Shown: one piece after another, positions 39,495 to 63,318 of the stretch | Layout: every line of letters starts with the position of its first letter | How positions within the stretch are numbered: position 1 is the first letter of the stretch | From: Magallana gigas | Lineage: Eukaryota | Reading direction: 5' to 3' | Assembly: GCF_963853765.1 (NCBI RefSeq) | Contig: NC_088860.1 | Location: 26,660,001 to 26,724,000, forward strand | Length of the DNA stretch: 64,000 nt | The notes under the pieces: model-generated | Database searches by the model: none | Seen by the model: only the letters and a program-made list of their open reading frames with translations | What the model was told of the DNA's origin: nothing | Translations under genes and position numbers: made by a program

Positions 39495-40341
39495 CATCTA
39501 GGAGTATCATATTGGTTTTTGTTACGGATATAGTATTTTGAAACGTTTTCTCGTCGACTAGAAACAATTTCTCGTATCTAAAGATATTCAGGTACCACAC
39601 CTGTGTGAATTTTATATAATATTTTCATTTTTCGTAGCGTCGCTTTTATAAAGGTTTCCAGCCTGTTTCAAAATAAAGTGATTCTCATTTGGAGATCAAG
39701 TACATGTACATTCCTTGCGGCGGACAGTTGAGCCTTGTCCTTTTTTTTTCTTATAACGTGCAGCCATACCAAACAACTGAAAAATATTCAAGGAGAGTTC
39801 TTATAAACGTTGCACATTGTATACAATTTTAAAAGCTTTTCCCTCCCAATCGTAAATTGAAGTTTTTCTTAAGAAGACCCAGTTTTTTTTATAACCCATT
39901 GCTTATAATATAATTAACATATTCAGACTATCCGGGGTTTTGCGACAATGATGATGGACTGATACAAATTTAGTCCATCGCCTTGAATAAAAAACGGATT
40001 TTTTATAATAGAAAAAATATCAAATTTGTTTTTTGATGGATTAAATTTAAGAAGCCATTGCAAGACCATTTTTCTAATACATGTAGATCACGGTTTAAAT
40101 TTGATTCAATATCTGATATATTATATAAGGCATGTTGTAGAGAATTGTCATCAGCAAACAGTCATGTCAATAACATGTTAAACATAATTTATATCATTTA
40201 TATATAAAGGATAATTAAAAACCATCCTGTTAGCATGGGTTAAAATTGAAATTTCTGTGAGCGACACATTTGAATGAATCTGATTAAAAGATTATGATGG
40301 CGAAATTTTTGTTGAATCTCTATGCAATTGCTCTAAGAAAA

Positions 40342-40343
<2 letters not shown>

Positions 40344-40415
<72 letters not shown>
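40344..40415. repeat. (CT)n microsatellite ~200 bp upstream of the receptor start codon
   Basis: Pure CT run. Confidence 0.97.
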
Positions 40416-40419
<4 letters not shown>

Positions 40420-40632
40420 AATTTCGGTAGCTGATAATACGGTCATCTTGAAATATAAACCCATTTTAAATATAGCTCGGTCGAACCCACGCAATAAGTA
40501 AATTAAAAGAAATTTTGATTGACGTTTTCATTCGAAGGGCTGTTTTAAAATTTGTATAAATAGAACGACCGTTTTCAAAATACAAAATTTAACAATTCTT
40601 TGACACAGAAGGGTTGCGACATAGAAAAGAAG

Positions 40633-43600
40633 ATGCATCGGATGTGTTGCAGCTGCAAGACTATAGGTTTTGTGATATTCATCTCAACTAAGTTGATTTG
40701 CGTTTTGAGCCAAGGTAAGCATCAGTAATAATAAAATAATCTATTAATTGTCATGAGTTAAATTGCAACGGTGTACACATATAATTTAACCTTTTTTTTT
40801 ACTTGAATAAAAATCGTAAATTATTGAAGTAAATTTTAGGCGCACTTTAATTACATAAAAAGTTGTACATGTATTGAATATTTAATCCATTGTGTAGTGT
40901 TTTAACTACATGTACCTCAACGTATTNNNNNNNNNNNNNNNNNNNNNNNNNNNNNNNNNNNNNNNNNNNNNNNNNNNNNNNNNNNNNNNNNNNNNNNNNN
41001 NNNNNNNNNNNNNNNNNNNNNNNNNNNNNNNNNNNNNNNNNNNNNNNNNNNNNNNNNNNNNNNNNNNNNNNNNNNNNNNNNNNNNNNNNNNNNNNNNNNN
41101 NNNNNNNNNNNNNNNNNNNNNNNNNNNNNNNNNNNNNNNNNNNNNTTACTAACTGTTGCAATTTTTATGGTTTTCTCTTAAACACTCTCCATTTTTACAG
41201 TTTGGGCCAAGATAGAATTACTGTGTTCACTTTGGATTTTTCATTTTTCAGTGGCAAAGTTGTAGGTCAACCATAGATATACCGTGTGTTCCAAACATAT
41301 TAACGGAATGCTCAGAGTATTTCAATTCCTATTTGCCATTTTTTTTGGAAAAGGCCGTTTAGAAGCCTTAATTGGAGCAAAATTTAATTATTGTCGTCCT
41401 GTACAAAAATTGATTTGCTATATGTTCCTTAAAAGAGAAATATTCCTCTGACAAAATTTAATGATTTTTATCTAACCTTATTTATCATAAAAGTTAAAGT
41501 TATATGCAGACTTATCATGCTAGCAGCTTTTTGCAGCAAAATAAAATTCAAAAAAAGTACAGTTCATAATGCTTTAAAAATTCCCGAAAAGAAATATACG
41601 CTTAAATTTTCATCGGTGAAAGAAGAATGTGATAGGTATCTTATCATTCATAAATATACATTTACATCTACCAAGCATAATTTCCTCTATTTCTTACGGA
41701 AACTTATAGTTAATTCATAGCTCTATAGAAACACCCAGACTGATATCTACACGCCCTATTTATCGATTGGTCGAAATCTACAGCGGCTGAAAGTGACAGA
41801 ACTGAAATTGACACGCCCTGTTTATCGATTGGTCTGAATCTTCAGCGACCTTAGTAAAATCCCGGACTGCACGAAATAATCATGACAATGCCAGACTCAA
41901 AGTCTCACAGGAGACGATTTGACTGTTTCTTTCAGCTAACGTACTTTTGTACATTAACAGTAATTTAGGGAATTTTACTAACTTTTTATAATCAGTTTAT
42001 AAATTAGTTAAAGAAAGATGTTAATATAAACAATAAAACGCTTTCTTTGATGATTCATGCGGGTTATGAAGGTAGCGATCATTGCAGGAAAAATTTACAT
42101 AACCCGCTAATGCGGGTTATGTATTTTTCCTGCAATGTCGCTACCTTCATAACCCGAATGAATCACCAAACAAAGAATTTTATTGTTTAAAAAAATTCAG
42201 AGTTCTCTAGGACAATAAGGCAACATCTCTATTTTATATTCTCTAAACAATTTATTTCCAGGCTGTCATTGGCTGCATAAATAATGTACATTTTCAAAAC
42301 TTTTTTCATCCCATATTCATAAAATTCCCTATATATATCATTAATTAAACATTCTTTAGAACACCGGGTGATGACACAGTCGTGTGATGGCGACTGGGTC
42401 CGGTATGGGGACAGCTGTTACCGATATTATACGTCACAGATGAGATGGATGTACGCCTTCAAGACGTGCCAGTCAGACAATGGATTCCTAACAGACATTG
42501 AAAACGCAGACGAGCAAGCCTTTCTGCAAAGTAATTTCAATCAATGTACACTTTGTAGACTTTCTTGCAGAATAATATTTACCAATACTCAACATAAAAA
42601 CTTTTATAAAATATGGATTACATGTTAAAGTTATAATTCATATGACATATCTTATAGATGTTCATCTTGAATGGTGTTTATTGCTTTGCAGATTTAACCA
42701 ATGGAGGCGAGTTTTGGATAGGGGCGTCGGACTGTGCATGGAGATGGCTGTGGTACAGCAGCACCCAGCCCTGGGGGTTTACCAAGTGGGATACACGTAC
42801 GGCATTTCAATTTTTAAAAATCAGATGTGGTTAACGTTCCACCTTTAAATAAATGTTCTATATTCTATTTGTTTAATGTCTAGAATAATTTTCGTTGTAT
42901 TTCTTATGATTGACAGCGTTTGAATGTCAAAAGTCGAGATTTATGTACAAACAAGATACTGGGTCCGGACACTTTTTCTTATGTTAACTGTAAAATCCCT
43001 ATTTTTTTGAAACACTGACAAGTGATAATTGTGATATTAAACTTTTTGAAGAAAAAAAAACCCCACAAAAACAACAACAACTCCCCAAAGAACAACAATA
43101 ACAACAAACCCACAACAACACCGAGATAAATGAAACATTTGCCAATATCACCTATGTAACTATAAAATAGCAGGAGCCCAGTCTACATAACAAAAAATTC
43201 TGAGCTCTTTATTTCTGTTGCATTTCGACATTCAACATTTTGTGAAGAATATTCCGTCAATGCTAGATTCTAGAAACGATGTTAAAAAAAACGAAGATGG
43301 GGTAATAAGATGGCACAAATCCCCACTGATTGAATTGTCAACAAAAAAAGCAATTTCAATTTAGTTTTTTTTTTGGGGATAATTTTCTTAATTACAAAAA
43401 GGAACGTTACCGTCAATTTCGGATATCTACGCAATGCGCAATGCCTTTTGTTTCCAGATTAAGAAATGAAAAGACTGGACATGCAAATAGTGATACGAGA
43501 CAATTTTTGCTTCGATGGATAGAAATCATTAGATAATGTACTGGAATTGACATATCAACTTAAATTGAGAGCGAGTGAACAGGGTACCCTTAACGTGGTT

Positions 43601-46600
43601 CAAAAATCTAATAAAAGCATATATCATGTTAATAAATAAATTAAATAGACAGAGGATATACGCTCTGAAAGAAAGTTAAAAAAAAGGTTCTTACGTCATG
43701 AGCTATATCATAAAGCTACGTTCATGACTTCTTAGAGATTTCGACAAACTGACCGCACTATAATAATATCCAATATACTACACCATCGATTACAAAAAGA
43801 GTAATTATTTACTTTATATATAAATAATGGAAAAAAATGTAAAATAGAGCATCGTTGCCAATTTTTACAGAGCACTAAGTTACGAAATTCTACAAGAACG
43901 CCAAAGATCTAGAAATGACGTCGCTAGCGTGCGGCGACTATCGTTACCTTATGCTCTACAAAATATATTATCTTCAGTAATATTTATCATAACGCATTAA
44001 CATTTACAGATCTGAATTGAATTAGGTAGATATCTCAAAGTACAAGTTCTTGTCACTTTACCTGAATTTTACACGATTTTATCGTAGCTGTGGCATTAGT
44101 TTTGGATCAACCCTCGTATGTAATACAATTGTGCAAAGCGCAATTTTCAACTTTAGGCAATTTAAATATTTTGATTAACACAAAGAAAATTTTAAAAATC
44201 AAACTATCAAGGCATTGAATATCTAGAAATGGCATTATTTTAAGACTTTAGTATTCACATACATCGGTTCAAATCAACATAACTCAAGTAATTATAAATC
44301 GATGCTATGTAAAATATATACATGTATATTGTCTGCAACGATATTATGAAAGAATTATCAGATTTAATTTTTTTAATGGCTCAAATTGTGATCATGCTTT
44401 TCTTACCCTCTAATGGCACTGCATGGATTATCACAATGACTCTTAACACATATAAGCTTTTATTATTTATACATGCATGACCTCTTATATAGACACTAAT
44501 GTCCTATGTGTCTTTTAATATTATGAAATTAATATTTTTTATTAATATAATTAGGACAATTTCATACAATGGCTATGTTATATTACCTTGAGATTACAGT
44601 TTCGAAAATACAGAATTATCTTCCTTCTTTACCGAGAAAACGAGACTTAAACCCGGTAACACTTTTTTGGTGGATCTAGTAAAGATTAGCATCTACGAAT
44701 TCCATATTATGTACTTTAACACAAACGGTATTCGTGGTATGCAATGTAAAAGAATTTGAATCAAGAGGCATCGAGTGATCGTTCAATGAAGATCTATCAA
44801 CAACGAATCAAAATGATTATGAAGCCGTATCGAAACCAGAGATAACTATATGTATATTTTTTTTTAAAATGACATGTTGAATTGAGATGAAATATTATTT
44901 CGGCAAAAATTATTTAAACCACAAAGAGAAAAATGGATTAGTTTGTATTTGCCTTAAAAAATGCAAATGGAGTACTTTAGGTAAAATATTGCACCTGTAA
45001 AATTATTATGAGTGGACTCTATAACATATAACGTAAGTTGACGAATGATTTTAAGTTTACTGCTTTGAACAGATCAGCCCGATAACTCCGGGAATAATGA
45101 ACACTGCGGAGTAATCAGGGCAAACGGCATGTGGAACGACCTCCCATGTAGCCACACTCGGCCATTTGTCTGTAAAAGAAAAGGTGGGTTGTGAGTGTTA
45201 ATTTAGGAGAACATTAAACGTAAATTAAACGATTGAAAAAAAAATGTAATAAACGTAACTGTCAAGATAGAAACAAATGAAAACATAAAGAAATTAAAAA
45301 TATCAAAATTTTATACGTACCATTGGATTGTTTTTTTAAATAATTTTATTCAGTTTTAAAAATTGAATTGAATTTTTAATGTTACACACATTAATTGCAG
45401 CCACCAAAGGCCTGGTTTGAATGATTAATAACAAGTATCAAAACATGTACATGTACCTACAATCAAAGTGTTGATAATTTTTCTTTCAGTTACTTTATTT
45501 TTTTGCGACAAAACATGGAGTACGAGAAAAGGAAGATGCTACAAAAGATTTCCCGGAACGCTGAGGTGGACAAGCTCGTTCGAGCTCTGTCAGTCAAACT
45601 CCGCAACGCTCGTCAACATTGAGAACGATGCTGAGCAGACATACGTAAATGGTCAGTTGATAATTTGTGTGATTGAAATCTTAAATTATTCTATTGATTG
45701 AATGCTATAAATGAATAACTTTATTCACGATTGGTACACAATATAGATTGACATCCAGGTTTAAAAAAAAATCGTCTGTTCGGCAGGTTTATATAACTCT
45801 TATCATCTGTGGGTTGGTGGATTTGATGGGCCCCAAAACGGAGAATGGGCATGGGCAGGAACAACGTTACCTTGGAATTATACGTACTGGGATCGAGGTT
45901 ACCCCTTTTCTATTAGTAAAAACTGTACTCATAGCAAAGAGAACGTTAATCAGTGGTTCTTAGGAGTTGTTTTTGTTGTTGATTTTTTTTAAAAATCTTT
46001 ACGTTTGTCTTTAATCTATTCTAATCTTATTCTAAACTATTTAAGGATACATTTAATATCAATANNNNNNNNNNNNNNNNNNNNNNNNNNNNNNNNNNNN
46101 NNNNNNNNNNNNNNNNNNNNNNNNNNNNNNNNNNNNNNNNNNNNNNNNNNNNNNNNNNNNNNNNNNNNNNNNNNNNNNNNNNNNNNNNNNNNNNNATATT
46201 AGTTCTTTAAATCTATGGGTTGGTCGCAATTTTGTAAGGAGTAGGTAAACACAAGCACTAATCTTCCCATGCTTTCTTATTTCTCTCTGTCAGTAAGAGG
46301 TCAACCGAACAATGGGGCAGAGGACTGTGTAGTGCTCGCTCAAGACAAAGGAAAATGGCATGACATAACTTGTTTAGGATATATACCATATATATCAGTG
46401 ATGTGTGAACGCAATAGTATGTATTGGGATCCTTAACATAACATTTAAATTAAAAAAAATCACTTGGTCAATGATTGAAAAAAAGGTAATTTAAAATAAA
46501 AATATTTTCTACTATTTAACGTTCTGTTTTACAATAAACTAGACTTTGACCCGTGCGTGCACGGGTTGACATTGCATAGTTTTATGATATCGGGCATTTA

Positions 46601-49600
46601 CAAAATAGATACATCATATCGAAACACCGTATATTGTTGACATTTGCATAACAAACTTCAAGTCTGCAATAATGCTAATAATTTCACTACACTCTGCTGA
46701 GTTGGAATAATCTACCTGTGTCTTGGGAAAGGCCTTCACTACAGTTAAAATGCCTCCTATATACCCGTATTGTAGCAGAAAACCGCAGAATCGCTCCAAA
46801 ACGATTTTGGAGAAAATTAATAAAGTTGCATTGAAAATAACAGTCAAATTGTTCATAACAAACCATTTTGAAGCTTTATATACCTTTCTTCAAAAAGTTT
46901 AATTCTATAATTGCAGAATTCAACATATTACAACAACGTTTTTTTTACAAACCATGTTGACATTCGAAACTCTCGGGATTTTTTTTATAGTAAATGCACT
47001 GTATTAGAATTATCTCCCGTATATTTCTTTGACGAACAGAAAAAATTTCCGATGAAAATTACCACGAATTTGTTTTATCGTTTCCAAGTTTATCCATGCA
47101 AGTATGATATTGTGGAAACATAAAGAGCCTCCAATGAGTTAGCGTGAATGTAATGTGCATGCGCAAAATTGTAAAATAAAAAAAAAATCAGATGATTTCC
47201 GGATTTTTTTGAGGAATTTTCGTTGATTATTAATTAACGAAGCTTGGTTGAGAAAAAATAAAAACAAATTGGTAATCTTCAAGTACTAATGATGTTTAAG
47301 ATATATAAAACAAAAGACACTACTCTTTAAAATTCCGATTTATCGGTATTAAAGCCCAAAAATTCGAGTCTATTATTTTAATATAGTAGTATAGATATAA
47401 AATGAAACAACACAAGCTATGCACATCTACTAACATTTTCCATTAACTATTCATTATATCTTTAGCATTTCATTTGACCAACGACCCTGTTTTGACAATG
47501 GCAGTGGAGGCCCCCAGAAATGAAACGAGATTTATCTGTACCTTTAGTTCCAATATTTCGGATGTCGATTTCTTATTGGAGTGGTATCTCAATGATGGAG
47601 TTATCCAAGATCACACATTCACTGACGAAACAGAAAGTTCACTGCACGAAAGAGATTTACCATTGTTAAAGCAAGAAGATCAGGTATAATTGTACAATGC
47701 AATGTTGCTTAACACTAAATTCAGAATGCAAAAATAATAATCCGCTGTTATCATTATATATTTACATTTTTCAGTGTCTTTGCCTGTGATAACACTACGC
47801 TATATATTTTCTTGTTCAGATTTTCATCTTCTCCAAAATTAGTGAACGCTACCTGGAATCAAACCGATATCTTTTGATTTATTTTATATATTTTTTTCTT
47901 CAAATAAAAGATAAAATGTGCCGTAACCCCATGCATGCCGGGAAACTGCAGTATGAGAGGATCTCCTGGCGAAAGCAACGTTATCACAGCAAAGGTCCAG
48001 GTATGATGTATATGATAATATGTGAATTACTTCCCCTTAATACTTATTGATCGAAATGTGAGGTTGCATGAATAATGATGTGTTTATCTTTCACATGACA
48101 GGTGGCTAGCGAGTCCCGGATCACGGTGGCTGAGAGCTCAGGCCCCGCCTACATCAATGTCACCAGTACAGTCCCCCTACAACTGTTTTGTGAACAAAGT
48201 CACCGAGATAACATCGAACTATGTAACGCACATGTCTCCATCGAACTAGTGAGAGGTGGCATATACTTTCTACACTTAAATTCTTCTTTTTGTTGAGTCA
48301 TATTTTTTTTAAAGATTGCATACTTTGAATTATTTTATCAATAATTCAAATTCGCGTTTTCAAAGTGCGAGAAATTGACCGTTAGTTTGCCTGGTAAATT
48401 AGAAAAGGTTTCTTATTCGCTCCATTAGAACCATTATAACAAGATCTTGGACTTTCAGTAGGACGTAACTATCTATTTGATGCTCAAAACGAGTTAAAAA
48501 TGACGCTGGTTTCAAATGAAATATATACTGATTGCGTAGTCTTAGCTCAAAACCCAGACAAATCTTGTTGATTTCAAAGTGCAATGGCCAAGTGGCCTTC
48601 ATGAAATAGACAGGCCTACGTCACATTGCTGTTTGACACCAACTACCCAAAGTCCAAGCTCTTGTTAAAATGGTTCTAAGTATCATTGGATAAGATGAAA
48701 ATATGTTTTGTACCTTTTAGGACGAGAAATGACCTGTGGTAGATTTCATGTCCCCGTCAGTCAAGCAGTATTTGGTATGTTCAGTCCGCACTCCAAAGCG
48801 TGCACGTACCAAATGAACACGTGGTCGTCTGGAGTGTTGATTCCTGTAAAGGCAGCACTCGACGGCATAATAGACAGAAACCAAAACAGAAATATACGAG
48901 TTCTTTTTACCGCTTCAAATGTCACAAAATTAATCTCAACCGTGGAGGTAAGATCTGGCTGTTGGACCATAAAACTCTCCGGTGACGGAGCCTGATTTAA
49001 ATTGCTTATCATAAGCACAATTCAATAGATATAATTGCAAAGAATATTTTATTTCTTCTAAATTAAGTGATACGTACCTTTACTTCTAACTATATACATG
49101 TTTCCAGCTGAAAACCTTTAAATGATATCACCGAAGATCGACATGTGCTGCCTACATTTTTGAGTTAATATTTCAATTAAGTAAAATACTTTTTGGTGTG
49201 CCTAGAACACAGTTATTATTTTAAAGTTGTCGTACTTTAATATCTTTTGTTGTACACTAGCTAACTGTTGTGGATGAAGATAGGGTAGCAACATGTTCAT
49301 CTATAAACGACCCTCACATGACAACATTTGATGGAAGGTACATCAATACTCAGATTTTTTCCACTAAATAATGTCTTTTTGTGACTTTTACGTTTTCGAT
49401 TCATCTTTGTACATGTATCTAAATATTAATGACATTGGTTTGTAGATATTATGACAACTACCTGGAGGGTGAATTTATTTTGTACAAACACAAAACTCTG
49501 CCCTATGAGGTATGGTTTATGCATTACGGGTTATGCATTCGTTCAAATAAAAATAAATATCTAAAGAGAAGAAAGATTTTTAAGGCTACCGAAATCAAGT

Positions 49601-52600: not shown

Positions 52601-55600
52601 GAATTTATCAAGGGTTTCTGAGGAGGAGTCGTTATTTAGAGGTGATTGCAGGACATCAACTTCCAGCATCGCTGAAAAGGGCATTTATTGCGATTGTATG
52701 GAGAGACAAACTGCTGTTTGTCAGCAAGGATTAGATGTGATGACATGTGCTGAGATTCAGAAGAGGAAAGGACTTTTAAATGGACAAAAAGGTCTGGGTT
52801 AAACTCCAGCTAAGTATTATAATAAGAAGGGATTGTAGATTGAAAATTGACAAAGTTGTTCCGTTAAAGTCTACATAATTATTTAGTGTTTCATAATACA
52901 AAAAAGACAAATTTCTAAATGCGTATACATGTACATACACTTGAACTATCGTTTATGCACTTTTTATGGGGTTTGACGGCTATGTGAAAATGATACTGCC
53001 TGGAACCCAGGTGCTGTCTTCAATTTGAAACAATTTCGCCCTAGTTTTGATAACTAACTACCTATAAAAACTTTTTTTCTCTCTTAGGAGTCAAACTTAT
53101 CACGCAAGACTTGATACAAGATGCCGAGTCCCCTCCTCTTCGATGCGTGTCACCTCGGAAGTCAGACTCATTTGAGTTTGACCCAGAGCATATGCCACCG
53201 GTATTTATTGTACACATACACTCAAAAAATATTTTTCGTCATAACACAACAATGTTGAGGTATACCTATCCTTCTTTTAAACCATAAATAAGTTTTGCAA
53301 TTAAATCTTATGGTAATTACATGAGCTGATAAAAAATTGAAAATGAAATAAAATTTGATGTTAGCGTGTGTGAATCAACTATACTGGTATTGTACCAGTT
53401 ATCGGCTAAGACCAGTTATCGGCTTAACTGAGGGTTCGGGTCTATAGCACGCGAATATCCGAGATTTTTTAATTCAGTCATCTGTTTCTAATAAAGAAAA
53501 GTAAGTTTGCTTGAAAACTTTCTTCAATATGTTTTAAACCTGAGCTTTAACGATCAGTGTTTACCGCTGATTTACATCTTTGCACTTTCAGCTGAGAGGG
53601 AAGTGACGTAATAAGTTAAAAATAGAATATGACCTCTTTGTGATACATAATTATATCCCTTCTTTGATTTGACATATAATATCAATACATATAACATTTA
53701 TAAAGAAAAGGAACTCACTAAATTCCGAGAGATTCATGGCGCAGTTGAACACCTGATTGTATAATTATGCATTGATTAGCGTACAATTGTGTGTATTACC
53801 TATCATGATTAAAGAATAATTTAATGAGTTTAATTTATGTATAATTACCCCTACGACCTATAGGCTGACCCCGCAAGGGACATAATTCAATCAACACTTT
53901 GCAGAATATAAAATCAACATGTACAAGGATTTTACTATGTTATTATCACGAAGCCGATAACTGGTACAGTAAATCATAAAACCTAGGCAAATTCGGGGCT
54001 TCCTAAAAAGCCCAGAAACAATATGTTTTAGGTTCTAAATGATGATATAATCTAACCGATGGATAAATAAGGAGTTCACAATTTAAGGTATGAAAAGTTT
54101 TATTCCAATATATCAAGAAATAAGGAAACACGAGAAGAAAACGTAAAATTATAGCCGATAACTGGTACAGTGCCAGTATCTCTTACATAACTTGTTTATT
54201 TTTTTAAGATCCATAATATATTTAAGTAATGACTATATAGGGTGGGAATTATTTTTGTCTGTTTATTTTTTTTTAAATTAATTATCAATTATTTTGACCA
54301 GTATTGATTACAAATAAATCATTAATTTAAAAATATTTGTAATATGAAATTGCACCCTTTATCTGTATGTGCTATGCTTATAAATGCTTAAGGATAACTT
54401 GATGATAAACAGTGACACCAAAAAAAACAAACTTAAACATGAAACTGGTGTCCATGATACATGACTGATGCTTTTTGATAAAGAATATATGTATTTTGAA
54501 CATACATCAATAGCATAGTTTTCGCTTGTATGATCAAGAGTCAACCTGCCTTTATTTTCTATTCCAAATTATAGGACCCAATATGGCCTACCCCAAAAAA
54601 TATCACAGAGGACATGGCAAAGAAAACTTGTGAAGATTTTTTGGGAAGTGACAAAGCAGGAGCATTATGTACGAAACTGCCAGGATTAGATCTAAATCCT
54701 ATACTGCAAGGCTGTATTACTGACATACAGGCGAGTGGTTATTTCACTTTTTTAGCAATCATATGGTATCAACATACTGTTATGATTCCGTTTTCAACGT
54801 AGAATTCTGATTTTTTTTTTCATTGATAGTACATGAATATTTTACAGTGATATTTAAGTTTGAAGATTACGAAGTTCATTAGAGTTTCATCACCTTTAAT
54901 TTTTTTTTATAGTTTTATCCGTTTAACTGTTGTGTAGATTTAAATTCAATATGTAAACAACAAATCTAAACTTAAATATTGATATGTTGCAAATATCTTT
55001 CATGCTGAGGGAGCAAACACAGATACACAGTCCGAGATAGCAACGACTGCTCCCCAGTCTAATATCAAATAAATGTATTTTCTGCTTTCCATATATAAAG
55101 GCAATCTTTACAGAAATTACTAGTTATCACAATCCCCTTTTTTATCTTCTCAATCAAAGAATTAAAGGCTACTTGAAGTTGAAAGTATTTGTATTTAAAT
55201 GTCCATTTTATCATCATTTATGGATCGTTAGAGTATCATTTCTAAAGCAAGATAACGTTGTTCAAAGAAGGATATATGCCCTTAATTTTTTATACGAATT
55301 TTTTGTATTTTTTTACGCAAAAATAGAAAATCTGTTTTGTTTGCAAGTAACGCATTGCTGAGTTTAAAATTTGATGTGAATAAATGCATAATATAAATAT
55401 CTAATAAATCATGTCCAGTAATGTCAAAAAGACGTTTTATTTTTTTTAATTGAAAAAAAATATTTATGAAAATTAAGAACTTTTTTTAATAATATTTTTC
55501 AAACCTATGGATAAAATTTTCTAAAGAAACGTATTCTATAGAAAGGAAATGCAAGGCAATCATCTTTAAAAAGAAATCAAATTGAATCAAATTGGCGAAA

Positions 55601-57723
55601 TTTTAGAAATAAGGCAAATTTTCAAAATTGAACCACACCCGATCGAAATTAAACTGATCCCGACTTGAATGATAGAAATTTTAAATATATAACAATTTCA
55701 CCCCAAAACTAGGATGTTTGGTTGTAATATGGCTTGTAAATTAGGAGAACAATTAAAAATCCAATTGATTTCTTTTCTGCACATGAAAAAATACTGTTGA
55801 TTTTTCATTTTTTTGTCTCTAATCGGGATCGGCCAAATTTTGAAAATTAGCAATATTTCTAAAATTTCGTCAATTTGATTCAATTTCTTTATAAAAAGTG
55901 ATTGCCTTATATTCTTTCTCCATAATACACGCATCTTTAAAAAAGTTTATCAGTAGGTTTGAAAAGTATGAACAAAAGATGTTTTCTATTTTCATAAATA
56001 ATTTTATATGAAAAAATTTACTTGCAACCAAAACAAATTTTCCATCTTTTCGTAAAAAATGCCAAAAAAAAATGTATGAAAAATTAAGGGCATATATCCT
56101 TCTTTGAACAATGTCAATTTGCTTTAAACATGATACTCTAACGATCTATAAAATAACATTTTGGTGTAGCATTCCACCTTAAATTGTAATCGGAAAAATA
56201 CAGTTTATGAACTGAAAATGTCTATAACGTTTTAATTAAAGGTTCAAATCCACTCAAAATGGAAACGTTTGTAATTTATTATGTGTCCTCTCGACATATG
56301 CAAAGAAATAATTAGAACTTTAGGTAAAAAAAAAAATATGGTGTATAAACACGACTGCATTTGTATGAATTTATCAGTTTTCATTGAATTCCGCGATTTC
56401 AACTAAAATGCTCTATAAACTGATATAGATTATTGTCACTTCACTTAACATTACTTAATCTGTGTAAAAAACAAAATTTAAAGGCAAGAAAAATTGGTTT
56501 TAAAACCGATTATGGTAAAATACTCCGGAAAGCTCCTGATGACGTAATGCGACAATCAACTGGCCTGAACAATTACAATGATTATTATAATATTATACTA
56601 GACTTTGATCAGTACGTGCACGGGTTGAGTTGACAATGCATATGATATCGGACATTTACAAAATAGATACATCAACACACCGTATTGATGACATTTACAT
56701 AACCAAGCTTTAAGCTTACAATAATGCTATTAATTTCACTTCACTCTGCTTAGTTAAAATAATCTTTGTCTCGGGACAGGCCTTCACCACAGTTAAAATG
56801 CCTCCCATTTACCCGTTATGTAGCAAAACATTGCCGTGAGAATCGCTCCTAAACGATTATGGAGAAAATTAATGAAGCTGCATTGAAAATAACAGTCAAA
56901 TTATTCATAACAAACCATTTTGAGGCTGTAAGTACCTTTCATCTAAAAATTTGATTCAATCATTGAAGAATTCAACACTTTTTCATCAACGTTTTTACTC
57001 GCTTCGAATTTACATACCATGTTGACATTCGGAACTCTCATATTAAATGCACTGAGTTAGAGTTACCTCCCGTTTTTTTCTTTGATGAACAGAATTTATT
57101 GCATGTTTCCAATAGTGAAAATTTACACGTATTTGTATTATCGTTTCGGAGTTTATCCATGCAAATGTGATATTGTGGAAGCATAAACTAATAAAGAGCC
57201 TCCCGTGATTTAGGGTGAATGTAATGCGCAAGCGCAAGATTGTTAAAATCCAAAAAATCCAGATGATTTGTGGATTTTAAAAAAAAATGTTTTTGTTGAT
57301 TATTAATTAGCGAAGCTTGATTGATAAAAAATAAAAACAAATTGGTAATCTTCAAGTACCAATGATGTTTAGAATATAGAAAACAAAAGACAGTACTCTT
57401 CCGATTTCTCGGTATTAAAGCCCAAAAATTCGAGTCTATTATTTTAATATAGAAGTATAGATTAAAACAAGTGTAAATGAACTTTTTGAGCTTTGTCTTT
57501 GGACTCGTTTTCATCCAGCAATTTTCTTGTTCTTTAAAAGCTTACAGACAGTACTGATTGGGCGAAGGAAAGCCTTGTCAATTTGCTACGAGAATGTATT
57601 ACCATAGTGGAGACGGACACAGACCAGTGGAGCAATGAGACAGAGGAGGCTGGTCCACCACCGGGTATTACCAACCTCATCTGTCCAAACAACTGCCAGG
57701 GCAACGGAAACTGTACTGAAGGT

Positions 57724-57785
<62 letters not shown>

Positions 57786-60700
57786 ACTGTAATCGTATCG
57801 TTATCGTGTTAAGGAAATGCGTGGCGTTTCATTGTTGCATTTAAAAAAGTCTTTTTTTATGAATTCCTATTATCAGGACTTTGTCAGTGCTTTCATCCCT
57901 GGATTGGAGACGATTGCTCCGTCAACAGTACTGTGCCACCACAGTTTGATCAAGTTGGCGATGGAGAGCCGTGTGACGCTGTTTGTTCAGAGTGTCTCTC
58001 TGTCAGATTATACGGCGAGAACTTTGTTGATGTTGAAAATCTTACATGCCACTATAAAGTACTGAATGTAGGTATTATTTGAAATCGTTTAAATCAAGCA
58101 TTTCAAAATTTTGTATACGCCTAAAAATTGAGTTACTTCTTTATCATTTGTAAGAGCTTTACTTTTATATTCAATATTCATTTGAAAATAGCTTATAATT
58201 AGGTAAACCTATGTTGAATTTCTCTATTCAATTTTAAACCTTATTTTGTCATTTTTTTTTCAGCTGAGACTGGATCCTATTTCAGATGTTAAAACAATAA
58301 AGGCGGCGTATCTTAACAGTGAAATAGTCAAGTGCACTCTTCCAGATGTAGCATTGTATGAAATTGCAGTCAGCAACGACGGAGAAATAACCAGTGAATA
58401 CAAACAATACATTGTTTTCAACAGTAACTGTCACCAATGCAACAGTTCTTGGTGTACAACAAGGGTATGCATAGGCTAATTATAAAATATTGTTTCTTTT
58501 GAAATTAGAAATAAAAGGAACGAGCTATTTTAATTTGTTATAAACATAATTCCTAACATGCATTATAAGATCATTTGATAAATACAATTTTATTGGTGTA
58601 ATTTTGAATTCATCATTAGCACGTTTCTCTTTTTCTCTTCTTGTACTTGTTTGCCCCATTGAAATTATCAGTGCATTCGTATAGAATAATATCTGCAAAA
58701 TTAATGGTGAGTGTCTGGACCATGGATTTGTGAATCCCAGGAACCAATTGGAAGTTTGCAACGTTACACTCTCTAAAATTCAGTGGTCTACTTTAAATGG
58801 TTAGTTAATGGAAAAACAGGTCTTTGATATAAACAATGATACCTGAAATAATGATTTTGCTGTAAAACACACCTTTCTCATTTAACCTTTCTCATTTATT
58901 AAGTTTTTCTCATGTGTTTTTTTTTATTCTCGTCCAATTATTATAAACAACTTCATTTAAAGATACATTACAATATTTCTAAGAAATGACATTGATAAAT
59001 GTTATCCATGTGGTAAACAATACATTTTATCTTGGTCTACTTTACATGATTTGCAGTTAAAGACATTCCAAAGAAGAGTTACGATTTTCAAGATATTTCT
59101 GGTCCCTTTGTTTTGACGAAGGATTCCAAAGTTTTAGTTGGGGGGACTGGTTATCCAGCAATAACAACTGGTTCTTCAGGAGGGAAAGCTCTCATGCTGG
59201 ATGGAAACCAGTACCTGTCAATGGGCGATTTAGTAAAAACAAGTACTTGTTTCGGTGATGCAGAAAAGAATCCACTTGGTATAACTATAAACCTTGATGT
59301 CAGACTAACAAGAAGCGCAAGCACCTGTTTTGTTTTCAGTACTGGCGGAGAGGAAGTTTCTCATTACGGATACGCTATTTGGCTCGAGAATGACAGTCTA
59401 TATGCCAGAGCTAGCAACAGTAGGCACGAATGGTCTGTTTCCATATCCAGCGTTCAGATGGATGAATTTATTCGTATACAGATGATGTGGAGTCTGCAAA
59501 GTGGATTACTTTTAAGCATCGATAACAACACAAAAGTATCAAGCAAGAAATGCATTTCAAGACCAGTCTCACATTACACCACTATTGAAGAATTTGTACT
59601 TGGAGGATCTTCAAAAAAAGACAAAAACTGCAAACTTGCTATAGAACGTCTTACCACTGTGTGTGCTTCTTGTGAAATTGTTAACAGAAGAGATCTATGT
59701 TTTATAGGTCAGTAACAAATTCCTTTCTTAAAATTCAAACATATATTTTTTTAGGAGTTTGGTCTATAAATGTTAAAGTAATAATTTGAAGTAAAGATGG
59801 ACGTTCAGCACTGAAGATCATACTTACATGTTGTACTCATTTTCTTTCAGAGCGAATCCCTCCGGTACCAAGTAACTCGTGCATAAGATCTTCGGCATCG
59901 ACTGCATTAGAAGCTGCAGTCATCTCTACATCTGTTCTTTCCGGAATTTCATTTTCCATCATCTGTTGCATATGTTTTATTTTCGGGTAGGGTAAAACAT
60001 ATATATTCATACGTAATAGTGACACACAAGCCATACTTTTAACTTAACTATATCTTAAATTTTTACACCAACTAAAGATTAAATTTTTAATTGAGAACAT
60101 TAATTCAGCGACAGATATTCTTATAATTACAGATGCAAACGACGGCGCAAGAAGAAGAAGCGGTACAATCATCTGATATCAGCTGAGCAGAGCAAAGGTG
60201 ATTGGAAAACGAAGTCTAAAAAAGCTGTACTAAATCCTGTATTCTTAGACGATTCCGGAACCTCCGCATACAGACATCACTGGACTGGAGAAAACCCTGC
60301 CTGGAGGATGTACAGGTACGTGTAAACACATGGACAAACATTGTTTGATTTTAAAAATGAGAATTATAATTTCAAAATGATTGATTAAGATGTAAACATC
60401 GATGAAAACCCTTTTAAAATATTTATTGTATATATCTAGGTACGAAGGGCATAACCAAGCCATTCCGCATGAAAGAGAAATAACAAATCGTGACGTCAAA
60501 CAAACCCATGACACAGGCATTCCATTTTACCAGGAAACAACTACAGGTAAAGTTGTACAAGGGTTTTCTGATGAAACAAGTGGAAGATCGTTTGCTCGCA
60601 CCACTCATGAAATCAGAACAGATCACATAGAAAAGACTAATTATAGAAGAAAAACTAGTTTTTCAGCGAATGACGAACATGGAAACCAATTCATTGATGG

Positions 60701-62830
60701 ACCTTTGGTCAATGAAGCAGTACGTATGTCAGCTCCAGAACATGAATCAAGCTTTTCTTTGTACCAAATATCAGAAAAGGAAAACCATAAAGAGTCGGCA
60801 GACTATAAACTCCAAAGACATGAAACGTTTACGGATAGAAGTCAAGCAATGATCAACACGAGATATGCAGAAAATCAAAGTCATGAGAAAACGATCAAAA
60901 CAATAAATACTAGCTTCTCGAAAAATGATCAGTCAAATGAAAGCCGATACCTTTGTTCATACTGTACGAGTCATGGTGAATTACATGGAGTAATGCTTAA
61001 AAGCCGTAACACAAGTGAGAAAAATTATTTTAAAGACAGCAGCTGTCAAACAGAAGCTTATTACTTACACTCAAGAGAAACGCAGAATGACATTGCTGAT
61101 AACAATAAAGACAAATTAACTTGCATGAAACAAAGCCATATCTCTGGATATCAAAGAGATGATGAAACGAATGTTTTGTCCTCTGCCAAATCATGCTTAA
61201 CTGTTTCGACCAGCCAAGCAACAACAAGTGAGCACCAAGATGTAGTATACGATGTCGAGGATAACCCAAGGCAAGTGGTGTTGGGTAGCATGGGTCATGC
61301 CATAGCTGAGGAAAGAGAAACAACACAATCAAGAACGCTTAGTGCGGCAAGAGAAGAAATTGCGGAGCTTTCCCCAAAAATCAATCCAACAGAGTCAAGC
61401 ATTGAATTGCTAGACAACGCGGTGTATTTATCAGAGAAAAACAAAGATAAAAAGAGATTGAGCCTTGAAGAACAAGAAAAAATGATTTGGTTGCAAAGCG
61501 AATATGAAGAGAATGAAATTAGTTCATTGCCTACTAGAATAGAGCAGCCACATGCGAAATATTCTAATGAGGCGACAGGAATACAGAGAAAGGAAAGCAG
61601 TGATGAATCATATGAAATAATAACGGAGTGGATTCCAGAAAACAAAATGAAAATTTATACAACGTCGCACAGCCTGTCGGAAAATTATGGCGTTTCAAAC
61701 CCTAAGGCATCAGAAAATGGAAGTGGCTACTCTCGACAAGGCCTTTTTGTTAGTAAGACCAGTGGAAAGGTTGACGCAGAGAAAATTGATGAAAAATCCG
61801 ACAATGCTGTTGGAAAAATACTTAAGTCTGAGAAGGAGATTGATCTTGGAAGTAACATTCAGAATAAAGAAATGATTTCAACGGACTCTGCGAAAGGGTT
61901 TATCATCCAATATGCAAATGATAATGAAACACAACCGAGTTATAAATCATATACAGCAGGCGAAACGATGAGAGACGGGGGTGAAGTTCATCATGCAAGA
62001 ATATTAAGGCATTCAAAGAGCGAACAGCAAAGCCGGGTAAATGCTTATCAAATGAATGAACAGAAGGCTATCGCAGAAAATAAAAAGTCGTGTCAACATT
62101 GTGGTGAAGTCATGAATACTGCAGATTGTATACCACTAGTTTCAGGGTCAGCTCGAAATCCCACTCAAGCTAAGCCGGACACATTAACCATTGTAGAGTC
62201 TAGCAAGAGCACTGAAATGGAAATGAAACCAGAATGTCAAAGCATCTATGTTATCAGGCGGTCAGCTGCTGAGATAGTCGAAGAGAAACCAGAAAAACAT
62301 TTTCATAGAACACTCTCTCGAAAATCAGGGGAAACGAGCGACGACTTTCTTGAATATGAATATAGCAGAGTAAACCATCGCTCTGATGAACAAAAACAAA
62401 AATTTGCTGCTGGTGTTCAGACACCTGAGATGAGACCAGTGGTCAAATCTTTCCAAAACGGGGATATCAAATATGATGTTTCCCAAATAGGAACTCGAAA
62501 AACAACATTGCAAAGGTATGATGTGAATACAGCTAAGAAAGTGGATTCTTCGGTAGATGATGAAAGCCTCGTCTATTACAAGCCGGATGGAATTATGTAC
62601 AGGTATTTTATATTTGGTAAATGCTCTTACTATTATGAGTTGGGGGGGGGGGGGGAGTTTTGTAAGAACATATTCATGCTTTTGTTCATTTGTTTAGATA
62701 CAAACCATGCGGATCAAAAGAATATGTGTCGGATAGCTATAGTTTTGTTTCTAGATCTAAAGTTAAGGAGCCACTCCAAGGAGAGTCGGTCGTCACATCT
62801 CAGAACAGGACAAGAAGAGATTCCTGCTAA
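40633..62830 (+). CDS. Type-I membrane protein: signal peptide - 2x C-type lectin - Ig-like/VWDE-like - VWD - EGF - LamG/ConA-like - TM - long disordered tail (VWDE-like family), ~2170 aa
   Basis: Phase-consistent exons: 40633-40714 (MHRMCCSCKTIGFVIFISTKLICVLSQ), 42360-42530, 42692-42796, 45073-45183, 45490-45651, 45787-45897, 46294-46416, 47466-47683, 47911-48000, 48102-48255, 48721-48947, 49261-49337, 49446-49509, 50085-50297, 51493-51607, 52312-52420, 52613-52791, 53088-53200, 54575-54730, 57541-57721, 57877-58067, 58264-58464, 58685-58799, 59057-59707, 59851-59986, 60133-60315, 60440-62602, then a terminal exon 62698-62830 (or 63225-63318). The terminal exon choice is uncertain. Confidence 0.85.
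40927..41145. other. Assembly gap (N run), intronic
   Basis: N run. Confidence 1.
41661..42190 (+). repeat. Interspersed host repeat, copy 2 (intact), ending in a ~164-bp palindrome
   Basis: Shares tttacatctaccaag, cagactcaaagtc, aaagaaagatgt and the hairpin 42027-42190 with copy 1. Confidence 0.85.
42360..46416 (+). CDS. Two tandem C-type lectin domains (six exons) of the receptor gene
   Basis: CTLD1: CDGDWVRYGDSCY...FWIG...QPDNSGNNEHC...WNDLPCSHTRPFVC. CTLD2: CDKTWSTRKGRCY...LWVG...GQPNNGAEDC...WHDITC...VMC. Each domain has the classic three-exon, phase-1 layout. Confidence 0.93.
46065..46195. other. Assembly gap (N run), intronic
   Basis: N run. Confidence 1.
46539..47395 (-). mobile_element. 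Non-autonomous Helitron, copy 1
   Basis: Minus strand A|TCTATACTACTATATT...; 3' hairpin CCCGTGCACGCACGGG followed by TCAAAGTCTAG|T. Confidence 0.88.
48426..48678. mobile_element. TA-flanked MITE, copy 2
   Basis: Same TIRs and internal sequence as 39241-39494. Confidence 0.85.
49261..58067 (+). CDS. VWD domain, Cys-rich (C8-like) segment and EGF-like module of the receptor gene
   Basis: VWD start CSSINDPHMTTFDG; GLCGTFDGNRNNDL...FSLSWR; EGF ICPNNCQGNGNCTEGLCQCFHPWIGDDC. Confidence 0.9.
49993..50067. other. AT-rich inverted repeat just upstream of a 3' splice site
   Basis: ttaaaaaaaattctatatccaatt ... aattggatatagaatttttttaa. Confidence 0.8.
50571..51090. mobile_element. TTAA-flanked non-autonomous element (Kolobok-like)
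   Basis: ttaa|agggacttggagacgattt ... aaatcgtgtttaagtccct|ttaa; the RR termini after TTAA argue against piggyBac. Confidence 0.75.
53382..54178. mobile_element. TA-flanked non-autonomous DNA transposon (~800 bp)
   Basis: 27-bp TIRs tactggtattgtaccagttatcggcta / tagccgataactggtacagtgccagta, with internal sub-terminal copies of accagttatcggc. Confidence 0.85.
55217..56152. mobile_element. Foldback-type element with long degenerate inverted arms
   Basis: 55217-55350 pairs with 56019-56152, and 55490-55635 pairs with 55830-55970. Confidence 0.8.
56598..57461 (-). mobile_element. Non-autonomous Helitron, copy 2
   Basis: Colinear with 46539-47395 over the whole length and with the same ends; the 3' hairpin is partly degenerate. 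Confidence 0.88.
57727..57782. repeat. (GA)n microsatellite directly after a donor site
   Basis: gaag|gtgag is followed immediately by the GA run. Confidence 0.97.
59057..60315 (+). CDS. LamG/concanavalin A-like domain, transmembrane helix and basic stop-transfer segment
   Basis: Exon 59057-59707 encodes ALMLDGNQYLSMG...GITINLDVR...FVFSTGG...GYAIW...L.IDN, a beta-sandwich pattern. Exon 59851-59986 encodes the hydrophobic AAVISTSVLSGISFSIICCICFIFG. The next exon starts CKRRRKKKKR (positive-inside rule). Confidence 0.8.
60440..62602 (+). CDS. 2163-nt single exon encoding ~721 aa of low-complexity S/E/T/K-rich cytoplasmic tail
   Basis: Core of ORF 60402-62867. Acceptor tctag|gtac at 60439/60440 and donor cag|gtattt at 62602/62603, both phase 2. 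Confidence 0.75.
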
Positions 62831-63224
62831 TGAAAGGACAAAAAAGTTTACAGGTATTTTATCCTAAGCAATAACGATATAGAGGGCAGCTGATTGATTG
62901 ATATATTGATTACTGAATAATATTGCATTCAAGACAAATCAATTAGTAAAGAAGTAATATCATACATGTGTCAAGGAACAAATAAAATAGTAACCAACAT
63001 TATTTAATAATAGAAAACGCGACAAGTAGTTACTATTCATGCCAAAGCATTACTAATAGATAAAATTATAAAATTTATTGACCGAGAATTCTTGCGATTG
63101 TAACATCTAAGAATATTTAATGTATAATAATTAAATTAGTGTTACAATGTTTGAAACAGACTACGGCAGTGATAGCTGAACTATTTAGATAATTATTAGT
63201 TTTGTTACCCTGCAATTTTTTCAG

Positions 63225-63318
63225 GTCTTACACAGATACGTCAAATGCAGCAGAAGAAGAAAAGGATACCATCACTACATACAAGTTATGGGAAGTTGAC
63301 AAGAAAGCTGGTGATTAA
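63225..63318 (+). CDS. Candidate alternative terminal coding exon of the receptor gene
   Basis: Polypyrimidine acceptor tttttcag|g. The phase-2 reading gives (R)SYTDTSNAAEEEKDTITTYKLWEVDKKAGD*. Confidence 0.5.

Follow-up and report, generated by a model that had tools for sequence, protein, structure and literature searches.

The DNA between positions 40633 and 63318 of the 64,000-nucleotide window from Magallana gigas raises the question of whether a single gene here joins C-type lectin domains (CTLDs) to a VWDE-like membrane protein and, if so, what such a protein might do. Rebuilding the coding chain from sequence gave one open frame on the + strand, the first copy (A1) of five in tandem, with 28 exons (29 with an optional cassette exon) encoding 2164 aa and a stop codon at 63316-63318, in good agreement with the 28 exons and ~2170 aa of the first-pass annotation.

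Gene structure and transcript evidence

The exon chain contains 26 GT-AG introns and one GC-AG intron (E19/E20), and every junction coincides with the C. gigas NCBI model, the cassette exon excepted. Junctions E1/E2 and E15 to the tail are placed by splice logic, by the NCBI models of orthologs and by a single long contig. The features, with P0123 and P0151 denoting NCBI models and A2, A3, B1 and B2 the other tandem copies, are as follows.

40633..40714, +, exon 1: signal peptide with its start codon, 27 aa and one further base (donor AAG/gtaagc, phase 1)
40927..41145, assembly gap in the E1/E2 intron, flanks colinear with A2
42360..42530, +, exon 2: CTLD1 first third (Pfam Lectin_C 2.5e-4; phase 1-1)
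42692..42796, +, exon 3: CTLD1 middle, WIGL-type core (agrees with P0123)
45073..45183, +, exon 4: CTLD1 sugar/Ca2+ loop, QPD, E, WND (Lectin_C 1.9e-7; loop alignment)
45490..45651, +, exon 5: CTLD2 first third (Lectin_C 2.1e-3)
45787..45897, +, exon 6: CTLD2 middle (exon chain from sequence)
46065..46195, assembly gap in the E6/E7 intron, flanks colinear with A2
46294..46416, +, exon 7: CTLD2 loop, QPN ... WHD (Lectin_C 6.1e-4; RNA pieces 46292-46416, joint to 47466)
47466..47683, +, exon 8: first Ig-like sandwich (RNA joints at both ends; fold model)
47911..48000, +, exon 9: end of first Ig-like sandwich (RNA joints)
48102..48255, +, exon 10: second Ig-like sandwich (RNA joints)
48721..48947, +, exon 11: second Ig-like sandwich (RNA joints; fold model)
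49261..49337, +, exon 12: VWD start, NDPH..TFDG signature (RNA joints)
49446..49509, +, exon 13: VWD (RNA joints)
50085..50297, +, exon 14: VWD (RNA joints)
51493..51607, +, exon 15: VWD (RNA joint 50297>51493; start of a 5556-nt contig continuing downstream)
52312..52420, +, exon 16: VWD end, GLCGTFDGN (Pfam VWD 5.1e-4)
52613..52791, +, exon 17: Cys-rich region following VWD (same junctions as P0123)
53088..53200, +, exon 18: Cys-rich region (exon chain; P0123)
54575..54730, +, exon 19: GC donor CAG/gcgagt (comparison with P0123)
57541..57721, +, exon 20: linker, then the first half of the EGF-like domain (comparison with P0123)
57877..58067, +, exon 21: rest of the EGF-like domain, which is of tenascin/teneurin type, and the module after it (Pfam DUF7949/EGF_Teneurin)
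58264..58464, +, exon 22: beta-rich module preceding LamG (exon chain; P0123)
58685..58799, +, exon 23: small Cys-rich (EGF-like) module (exon chain; P0123)
59057..59707, +, exon 24: LamG / ConA-like jelly-roll in a single exon (AF2 model, fold matches)
59851..59986, +, exon 25: stem and transmembrane helix (hydropathy)
60133..60315, +, exon 26: K/R stop-transfer run, with the NPVF motif next to the membrane (sequence, motif conservation)
60440..62602, +, exon 27: bulk of cytoplasmic tail, 721 aa (~0.9 of exon words present in 20 RNA runs)
62698..62853, +, possible 156-nt cassette exon, phase 2-2 (included by the NCBI model of C. gigas; in-frame stop in A1)
63225..63318, +, last coding exon, 30 aa and stop (A2/A3 83-87% identical; weak conservation in B1/B2)

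The signal peptide has a hydrophobic core score of 2.4, and P0123 and P0151 begin with the same exon. Each CTLD is built from three exons with phase-1 introns on both flanks, and every intron from E1/E2 through E7/E8 is in phase 1, a pattern that fits exon shuffling of lectin modules as originally proposed. The last large exon forms an 821-codon open frame, and the DNA there has a GC content of ~33%. Because the cassette exon of A1 carries a stop, the C-terminus of the protein is ambiguous.

Both assembly gaps are intronic, and continuity of the frame derives from splicing rather than from the gap letters. The gap-free paralog A2, 34 kb downstream, has corresponding stretches of 127 and 153 nt, and in both C. 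gigas and C. angulata the NCBI models link the same exons across the gaps. CTLD2 is complete across its gap, as the end of exon 6 and the start of exon 7 match the domain positions of exons 3 and 4 in CTLD1.

Eight joints are confirmed by RNA contigs, which come from three studies, together with stranded raw reads, and stranded run X24 places the RNA on the + strand. Spliced contigs of the three studies show the joint between lectin and stalk (46416>47466, GT..AG; runs X5, X6 and X24); it is followed by 47683>47911, 48000>48102, 48255>48721, 48947>49261, 49337>49446, 49509>50085 and 50297>51493, all GT..AG. Bivalves abound in lectin-only genes, and P0032 (51% identical), the nearest relative of the first stalk exons, has LamG rather than lectin before them; the locus might thus be read as two genes, one for a small tandem lectin that is secreted and one for a VWDE-like membrane protein, linked only by read-through or exon chaining. 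This two-gene reading is contradicted, and we regard it as extremely improbable, since the last lectin exon is spliced to the first VWDE-like exon in all three runs, and a single contig holds exons 8-15 together with 430 nt that lie upstream of exon 7. Exon phases are moreover compatible, predicted proteins of four oyster species have this fusion too, and no stop or polyA-type end lies behind CTLD2. The separate lectin and VWD genes that the first-pass annotation had named as its own counter-case are therefore not what the RNA reveals, and its single type-I membrane protein with the proposed domain order is upheld by the open frame, the domains and this joint.

Tandem copies and their evolution

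Over most exons and introns A1 is 94-99% identical to A2, which, together with the N gaps within the locus, might suggest that A1 is a young decaying duplicate or partly an assembly duplicate of its neighbor, so that the family is functional and this locus adds nothing. Decay does occur in the cluster, as evidenced by a premature stop in A2 and 5' truncation of B2; the cassette exon of A1 contains its in-frame stop, and the tail is nearly neutral among the A copies (dN/dS 0.8-1.0). However, the A1 frame is intact over 28 exons, and the RNA contigs of all three studies match A1 (0-2 mismatches per exon) rather than A2 or A3, copies that show 2-7% divergence. A1 also owns a distinct CTLD2 loop exon (QPN, 123 nt versus 108 nt), and the stalk dN/dS of 0.25-0.36 shows purifying selection. 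We therefore consider decay or duplication artifact an unlikely account of this copy.

Among the five copies the lectin domains change faster than the rest. Exon 7 is the most divergent exon (78-80% nucleotide identity to A2/A3), and in comparisons with A1 amino acid changes are overrepresented in the CTLDs compared with the stalk (Fisher p = 6e-6 and 0.012). CTLD dN/dS was not significantly above 1 and did not rise in the A2-A3 pair; relaxed constraint thus explains the pattern as well as diversifying selection does.

Domain architecture and proposed function

The encoded protein runs from a signal peptide through two CTLDs, two predicted Ig-like sandwiches (fold model), a VWD, a Cys-rich/EGF region and LamG to a transmembrane helix and tail. 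Pfam detected parts of Lectin_C in four lectin exons out of six, with VWD and EGF pieces downstream; in the full-length C. gigas protein, which is 93% identical, it found Lectin_C twice (8.6e-34), VWD (1.6e-12) and EGF. CTLD1 retains a complete galactose-type Ca2+/sugar site by loop alignment, and the CTLD2 site (QPN, WHD) is non-canonical. The ~1000-aa stalk bears the VWDE family signature S-I-N-D-P-H-x-T-T-F-D-G and matches vertebrate VWDE (E 1e-47 to 1e-52), which substantiates the VWDE-like assignment made at first sight. LamG was modeled with an AF2 pLDDT of 93, and Laminin_G_3 was found in 13 of 44 homologs. The transmembrane helix (aa 1335-1353, 19 residues with a mean hydropathy of 2.41) is followed by an 811-aa cytoplasmic tail that looks mostly unstructured, judged by composition. 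Three tail motifs, a juxtamembrane NPxF/Y (NPVF rather than NPVY in Crassostrea), SYEIxTEWIPE and an acidic W-L-Q, are kept among the Crassostrea A and B copies and Ostrea, although the tails as a whole share just 17% identity. Being so short, NPVF and YEII can have arisen by chance.

On these grounds we propose, with moderate confidence, that this expressed oyster gene encodes a cell-surface receptor, most likely one that recognizes glycans in a Ca2+-dependent manner and is coupled to uptake or signaling. The distal lectin pair would bind carbohydrate on microbes, particles or mucus, and the tail, through its conserved motifs, would couple binding to internalization or signaling.

The same protein could instead serve mainly in adhesion or as an organizer of mucus or matrix, the stalk binding matrix or polymerizing in a mucin-like manner, the lectins tethering it to the oyster's own mucus glycans, and the tail connecting to the cytoskeleton rather than to endocytosis. 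VWD, EGF and LamG are modules typical of matrix and adhesion proteins, the LamG fold matches LG domains of agrin, laminin and neurexin (Z 12-17.5), no other part is as well conserved between genera as VWD (71-75%), and infection transcriptomes list oyster VWDE genes among matrix and adhesion genes. However, the VWD is single and lacks the C8/TIL array used in mucin polymerization (Pfam, C. gigas protein), the best PDB sequence matches of the CTLD pair are endocytic lectin receptors (PLA2R, DEC-205, Endo180, MRC1, ASGPR), and the juxtamembrane NPxF/Y motif is conserved. The lectin loops, moreover, vary between copies and genera, which would be odd for a fixed self-ligand. An adhesive or matrix role is a less likely possibility. 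Of the roles suggested in the first-pass annotation, pattern recognition, particle selection and adhesion are candidates, and nothing in the analysis points to biomineralization. Glycan recognition remains our preferred reading.

Relation to known receptors

The first-pass annotation did not recognize this architecture, but it is already predicted in databases: uncharacterized LOC105328884 of Crassostrea gigas (XP_034327587.1, 2215 aa, 93% identical to the A1 protein), LOC128180252 of C. angulata, LOC125658012 and LOC130050218 of Ostrea edulis and a 'VWDE-like, partial' protein of Saccostrea cucullata share the domain order from signal peptide to tail, with the transmembrane helix at the same place and common tail motifs. 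The Crassostrea proteins are 92-98% identical to A copies of the locus, none being identical to A1, and the Ostrea and Saccostrea ectodomains are 54-56% identical. Isoforms of LOC130050218 end at or just past the transmembrane helix, without the long tail, and sugar-site tripeptides differ among the oyster proteins (QPD, EPN, EPD, QPN). Relatives of this design are found throughout the oyster family Ostreidae. They are not the characterized widespread family that the first-pass annotation had allowed for: these are computer predictions without a described function, and no description of the architecture was found in the searchable literature.

CED-1, Draper and MEGF10 are single-pass engulfment receptors with NPxY and YxxL/I tail motifs and an ectodomain of EMI and many EGF repeats. 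The conserved oyster NPVF/NPVY and YEII may recall those tails, a motif match that is weak by itself; the ectodomain is unrelated and no sequence similarity to these receptors was found. Members of the mannose receptor family (MRC1, PLA2R, DEC-205/LY75, Endo180/MRC2, FcRY) are, like the oyster protein, type-I membrane proteins with tandem CTLDs, and they provide the best PDB matches of the oyster CTLD pair (E 1e-25 to 1e-47). Their tails carry an aromatic NxxY-type uptake motif, which NPVF/NPVY resembles. We reject membership in this family because the oyster protein has only two CTLDs, no cysteine-rich ricin-type or FNII domain and a VWDE stalk instead, and its tail is ~20 times longer.

Vertebrate VWDE is homologous over VWD and the neighboring region (28% identity), and both proteins have the x-DPH-x-x-TFDG signature and Ig-like domains ahead of VWD. 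Vertebrate VWDE lacks lectin domains, LamG and a transmembrane helix (P0133 has no hydrophobic segment) and ends in a long EGF array, whereas the oyster protein has one or two EGF-like modules followed by LamG, transmembrane helix and long tail. Invertebrate VWDE-like proteins (Argonauta, Aplysia, Biomphalaria, Bulinus, Lottia, Lineus; P0008, P0012, P0079, P0119-P0131) consist of one or several ~1000-aa units, often two to five, and oyster residues 291-1305 match such a unit over its whole length (identity 28-36%, E as low as 1e-151). Many have a C-terminal transmembrane helix, with short tails of ~60-100 aa, and in some of these other lophotrochozoans the same stalk carries lectin-type heads (F5/8C discoidin, PAN or FN2); among the VWDE-like proteins found outside oysters none has C-type lectin heads or this tail. 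Membrane anchoring is thus common in invertebrate VWDE-like proteins, and the special features of the oyster protein are its lectin heads and long tail. As the gene is predicted but uncharacterized in oyster databases, this lectin-headed VWDE receptor is of interest as a candidate receptor for glycans and not as a novel type of molecule.

Exon structure and transcription of A1

The coding pieces of the studied gene, A1, are recognisable in stop-free stretches of the + strand from 40.6 to 63.3 kb, and the exon chain was built from AG and GT sites picked for matching phases. An initial version with 27 exons and one ORF of 2221 aa was replaced by a final model of 28 exons and one ORF of 2164 aa, in line with the 28 exons and ~2170 aa of the first-pass annotation, and we regard the gene and its architecture as modelled as close to certain.

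Features of A1 in the window
40633-63318, + strand: A1
40927-41145: N run in the exon 1-exon 2 intron; the matching gap-free stretch in paralog A2 is 127 nt
46065-46195: N run in the exon 6-exon 7 intron; the matching gap-free A2 stretch is 153 nt
62698-62853, + strand: cassette exon of 156 nt, phase 2-2, used in the C. gigas NCBI model, with its reading conserved in Ostrea

Both gaps have flanks colinear with the sequence of A2, the gap-free paralog lying 34 kb downstream. CTLD2 is whole across the 46065-46195 gap, its three exons mirroring the three of CTLD1 in identical phases, and orthologous NCBI models connect the same CTLD2 exons across it; the frame across both gaps comes from splicing, with no gap letters read or filled. 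Exons 1-8 are separated by seven introns, all in phase 1, and therefore each three-exon CTLD is a symmetric 1-1 module, as the phase-1 CTLD modules described earlier had it. Farther downstream, a splice between exons 19 and 20 at donor 54737 and acceptor 57548 was rejected because the paralogs carry GG at that acceptor, a change that is synonymous within the true exon. The true junction joins a GC donor at 54730, the end of exon 19, to an exon 20 start at 57541; the C. gigas NCBI model has this junction as well and reads I-Q-L-T-D there. The intron so defined (54731-57540) is GC-AG, and its donor, CAG/gcgagt, is the sole non-GT donor in A1. A (CT)n microsatellite (40337-40427) lies ~200 nt 5' of the start codon, and a (GA)n run (57722-57790) directly follows the exon 20 donor.

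The 2221-aa reading, in which the 821-codon frame is read on to a stop at 62867, was ruled out on three grounds: downstream of a G run the frame differs between public alleles, the spliced reading is kept in Ostrea, and the last exon is conserved. This G run, in a small intron at ~62640-62650, differs in length between public contigs and thereby changes the apparent frame of unspliced ORFs, as between P0117 and P0118, two ORFs from such contigs. The large tail frame exits at donor 62602 to a final exon at 63225-63318. Because the cassette exon holds an in-frame stop in A1, two C-termini are possible, either the conserved 30-aa last exon, with the cassette skipped, or a slightly shorter end. 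The cassette is framed by two occurrences of a 13-nt donor motif, TACAG/gtatttta (62598-62610 and 62849-62861), 251 nt apart and in the same phase.

Splice joints were surveyed by mapping four public RNA runs on window positions 46200-52199. The lectin-to-stalk joint 46416>47466, GT..AG, occurs in three runs, and further GT..AG joints were recovered at 47683>47911, 48000>48102, 48255>48721, 48947>49261, 49337>49446, 49509>50085 and 50297>51493. With exon 9 fixed by RNA at 47911-48000, a competing ORF at 47793-48047, in a different frame, was discarded. A 2586-nt contig holds exons 8-15 plus 430 nt upstream of exon 7, and a 5556-nt contig begins in exon 15 and continues downstream, its length sufficing to cover a 3' UTR as well as the 4.5 kb of coding sequence still to come. 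That the lectin and VWD parts are two separate genes is very improbable against a GT..AG joint seen in three runs; the earlier claim of a single gene holds, as spliced RNA links lectin exon 7 to exon 8 and the two parts do not lie on separate transcripts. Logan members of the protein clusters, being single-exon ORFs, are uninformative on splicing.

In a stranded raw-read run the first mates of exon reads lie on the minus strand, so the A1 RNA is on the + strand. Contigs from runs X5 and X6 differ from A1 by 0-2 mismatches per exon and the neighbouring copies diverge by 2-7%; the contigs fit A1 better than its neighbours, and so A1 itself is transcribed. The contig of run X1 is A1-like in exons 8-15 and carries 18 substitutions and 9 missing letters in exon 7 (46294-46416), a span of 114 nt, as homology mapping gave for A2 and A3 (108 nt after acceptor correction); it is either an allele from exchange between copies or a chimeric contig. 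Four intronic stretches (47200-47399, 47600-47799, 48400-48800 and 50600-51100) have very high contig depth with many loose ends in every RNA run; they are not A1 exons but repeats or fragments of transposons that are transcribed elsewhere. In 20 public runs from 9 studies the fraction of tail-exon words present is about 0.9, and almost none are present in three further runs from 2 of those 9 studies; this near-absence within contributing studies suggests that A1 RNA is tissue- or condition-dependent.

Domains of the predicted protein

Pfam was run on single A1 exons and, as a stand-in for the spliced A1 protein, on the full-length P0123 (C. gigas XP_034327587.1), which also served for the Ig-like fold model.

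Predicted domains of the A1 protein
aa 1-27: signal peptide, hydrophobic core 2.4
aa 36-156: CTLD1 (Pfam Lectin_C)
aa 163-288: CTLD2 (Pfam Lectin_C)
aa 290-520: two tandem Ig/FN3-like sandwiches (AF2 model of P0123:284-522)
aa 525-711: VWD (Pfam VWD and family signature)
aa 712-1089: Cys-rich region, one tenascin/teneurin-type EGF, further small modules
aa 1090-1306: ConA-like/LamG jelly roll encoded by a single exon (predicted fold)
aa 1335-1353: TM, followed by a K/R stop-transfer run
811 aa: cytoplasmic tail, rich in S, E, K and T, Cys-poor

Lectin_C (PF00059) matches four of the six A1 lectin exons and P0123 twice (8.6e-34), and the CTLD pair matches 149 PDB CTLD sequences. Judged from sequence, Ca2+ site 2, the sugar site, consists in CTLD1 of QPD, E (in NEHC) and WND, and all five Ca2+-site ligands are retained in a galactose-type form; the CTLD2 counterpart reads QPN, E and WHD, with one ligand altered. 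Pfam on single A1 exons gave no Ig-like match before VWD; in the AF2 model of P0123:284-522 (pLDDT 89) the chain forms a pair of beta-sandwiches, which match FN3, Ig and PapD-like folds at Z 8-10. For VWD, Pfam found a fragment in exon 16 and the domain at 1.6e-12 on the 93%-identical P0123, and aa 532-543 (S-I-N-D-P-H-M-T-T-F-D-G) carry the VWDE signature S-x-x-D-P-H-x-x-T-F-D-G, common to mollusc and vertebrate VWDE. Pfam Vwde (PF26129) is a precomputed annotation on P0123 and on the orthologous predictions P0129 and P0130, and is absent from our own Pfam scan of P0123. SAND and RNase_PH matches on single exons fell below the cut-off and were dismissed.

The LamG exon was modelled as a jelly roll of the 13-14-stranded type with pLDDT 93 and pTM 0.90, and the model matches ConA-like toxin HCN domains in Foldseek (E about 2e-8) and CBM40, pentraxin and laminin/agrin/neurexin LG domains in VIA (Z 12-17.5). 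The match to clostridial neurotoxin HCN domains is no sign of toxin kinship, only the ConA-like fold being in common, at 8-20% identity. The Laminin_G_3 profile gave no match on the A1 exon at E <= 0.01 and matched 13 of 44 aligned homologs (best E 3e-13).

Tandem copies and sequence change

The window spans G000:C8:26660001-26724000. Four more copies lie downstream of it on the same strand (loci L001-L014), and the A1 type of tail occurs nowhere in the genome outside this cluster.

Tandem copies on G000:C8
26733871-26757563, + strand: A2, one premature stop at codon 2019, in the tail
26764139-26780911, + strand: B1, diverged full-length type
26809064-26835845, + strand: A3, intact
26843361-26863732, + strand: B2, without the 5' part (signal, lectin and first Ig exons)

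Degradation is thus visible in A2 and B2; that A1, with its single ORF and its own RNA, is likewise a decaying duplicate we consider unlikely. Between A1 and A2, ~5.4 kb past the window end, lies a lone exon-11-like remnant (L001:5353-5610) with 74% identity to aa 436-519. A lost copy may have left it behind, possibly one of B type on a likeness judged by eye; if that likeness holds, the cluster comprises three repeats of an A-B pair. At 26985000-27041000 (L015-L021) an array follows on the same strand, with six or more VWDE-like units of ~8 kb each and no lectin, TM or tail exons; it probably represents either several single-unit genes or a single giant gene of many units, and is a plausible source of the A1 stalk.

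Most exons and introns of the A copies are 94-99% identical, and the segment around exon 7 only 79-81%. In comparisons with A1 the CTLDs carry 44-54 non-synonymous versus 7-17 synonymous changes and the stalk has a dN/dS of 0.25-0.36 (CTLD versus stalk, Fisher p = 6e-6 and 0.012). The CTLD excess is not significant against strict neutrality (binomial p 0.17-0.98), leaving positive selection on the CTLDs unsupported, and the A2-A3 pair has no CTLD non-synonymous excess. Across copies and genera the sugar-site tripeptide is QPD, EPN or EPD in CTLD1 and QPN, EPD or QPD in CTLD2. Cross-genus conservation of the ectodomain is lowest in the CTLDs (43-48%) and highest in VWD (71-75%). The tail is 17% identical overall between Crassostrea and Ostrea, with conserved islands at the K/R run, V-L-N-P-V-F/Y, CxxC, an acidic W-L-Q, S-Y-E-I-x-T-E-W-I-P-E and Y-Y-K-P-D-G.

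Tentatively, the five genes might form an oyster-specific variable lectin receptor family, in which a constant VWDE stalk and tail would carry CTLD sugar loops (QPD/EPN/EPD/QPN, WND/WHD) diversified between copies, individuals and genera through recent tandem duplication and inter-copy exchange. If so, hemocytes or mucosal epithelia would be equipped with a limited set of endocytic receptors for pattern recognition or particle sorting, and the long signalling tail with its motifs would be of a new kind.

Relatives and proposed role

Over its whole length, the unit formed by residues 291-1305 aligns with mollusc units at 28-36% identity (E down to 1e-151), the mollusc relatives being large proteins in which it is repeated two to five times. 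In Pfam terms, mollusc and nemertean relatives contain VWD (PF00094), Vwde, Ig_VWDE (PF25776), EGF_Tenascin and Laminin_G_3. Many invertebrate VWDE-like members have a C-terminal TM helix and a short tail, and some bear other lectin-type heads (F5/8C, PAN, FN2).

Oyster relatives of A1
C. gigas: XP_034327587.1, uncharacterized protein LOC105328884, 2215 aa, 93% identical, complete architecture
C. angulata: LOC128180252, 98% identical to A3, complete architecture
Ostrea edulis: LOC125658012, 2369 aa, homologous long tail
Ostrea edulis: LOC130050218, ends at TM
Saccostrea cucullata: partial prediction

The Saccostrea contig stops 330 nt past the TM exon, so the tail is outside its reach. The O. 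edulis LOC130050218 isoforms (P0139-P0141) terminate in the TM exon or immediately beyond it, and therefore a tail-less receptor version exists beside the long-tailed LOC125658012; a contig search found no contigs encoding the O. edulis protein. The LamG exon searched against 1.84 billion representatives yielded for the most part fragments from single exons, with no full-length protein among the close matches, and the tail returned only two genomic-type Logan ORFs. The architecture had first been taken as unrecognised, which does not stand, as databases already hold its prediction in four oyster species. In the literature searched, no publication names the A1 locus or its predicted oyster orthologs; oyster VWDE genes appear there only in lists of infection-changed genes (10.64898/2026.05.15.723513; PMC9679248), and the text of a bivalve C-type lectin survey makes no mention of VWD partners (PMC10140915). 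We conclude that A1 represents the invertebrate membrane VWDE-like family in a variant form with lectin heads and a long tail, conserved in Ostreidae, of a type already predicted in databases and neither described nor characterised.

The CTLD1 ligands, the likeness of the CTLDs to endocytic receptors and the conserved tail islands favour reading the protein as a surface glycan receptor, and we think it somewhat probable that lectin heads at the surface would recognise glycan and couple binding to uptake or signalling. The main rival, an adhesion or mucus-organising role, is possible and appreciably less probable. Of the original proposal, the observed membrane receptor with two CTLDs, a VWDE-like part, LamG, TM and a long tail is confirmed; its interpretation as a glycan or matrix receptor is upheld only in part. 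Bivalve C-type lectins number in the hundreds and nearly all studied ones are small and secreted; to our knowledge, the transfer of glycan recognition into the bivalve cell is poorly known. A mannose-receptor-like lectin pair joined to a VWDE stalk and a conserved, motif-bearing tail is a concrete candidate for this missing link, readily testable because the lectin heads can be expressed alone, and the tandem copies with their changing sugar-site motifs offer a natural series for the evolution of lectin specificity.

Among known systems, ASGPR/CLEC10A and the endocytic mannose-receptor family, through its tandem CTLDs, resemble the CTLD pair most closely. Mannose receptors have a ricin-type Cys-rich domain, FNII and 8-10 CTLDs, whereas A1 has two CTLDs right after the signal peptide, and Pfam found no ricin-B or FN2 domain in the A1 lectin exons or P0123. 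Vertebrate VWDE is a secreted, regeneration-associated protein with a long terminal EGF array; amphibian and bird sequences match at E 1e-36 to 1e-52 and ~28-31% identity, whereas A1 has one clear EGF-like module followed by LamG, TM and tail. The A1 protein belongs to the invertebrate membrane branch of VWDE and not to the vertebrate type, and VWDE is one member of a far larger invertebrate family, mostly bound to the membrane, in which lectin-type heads are interchangeable.
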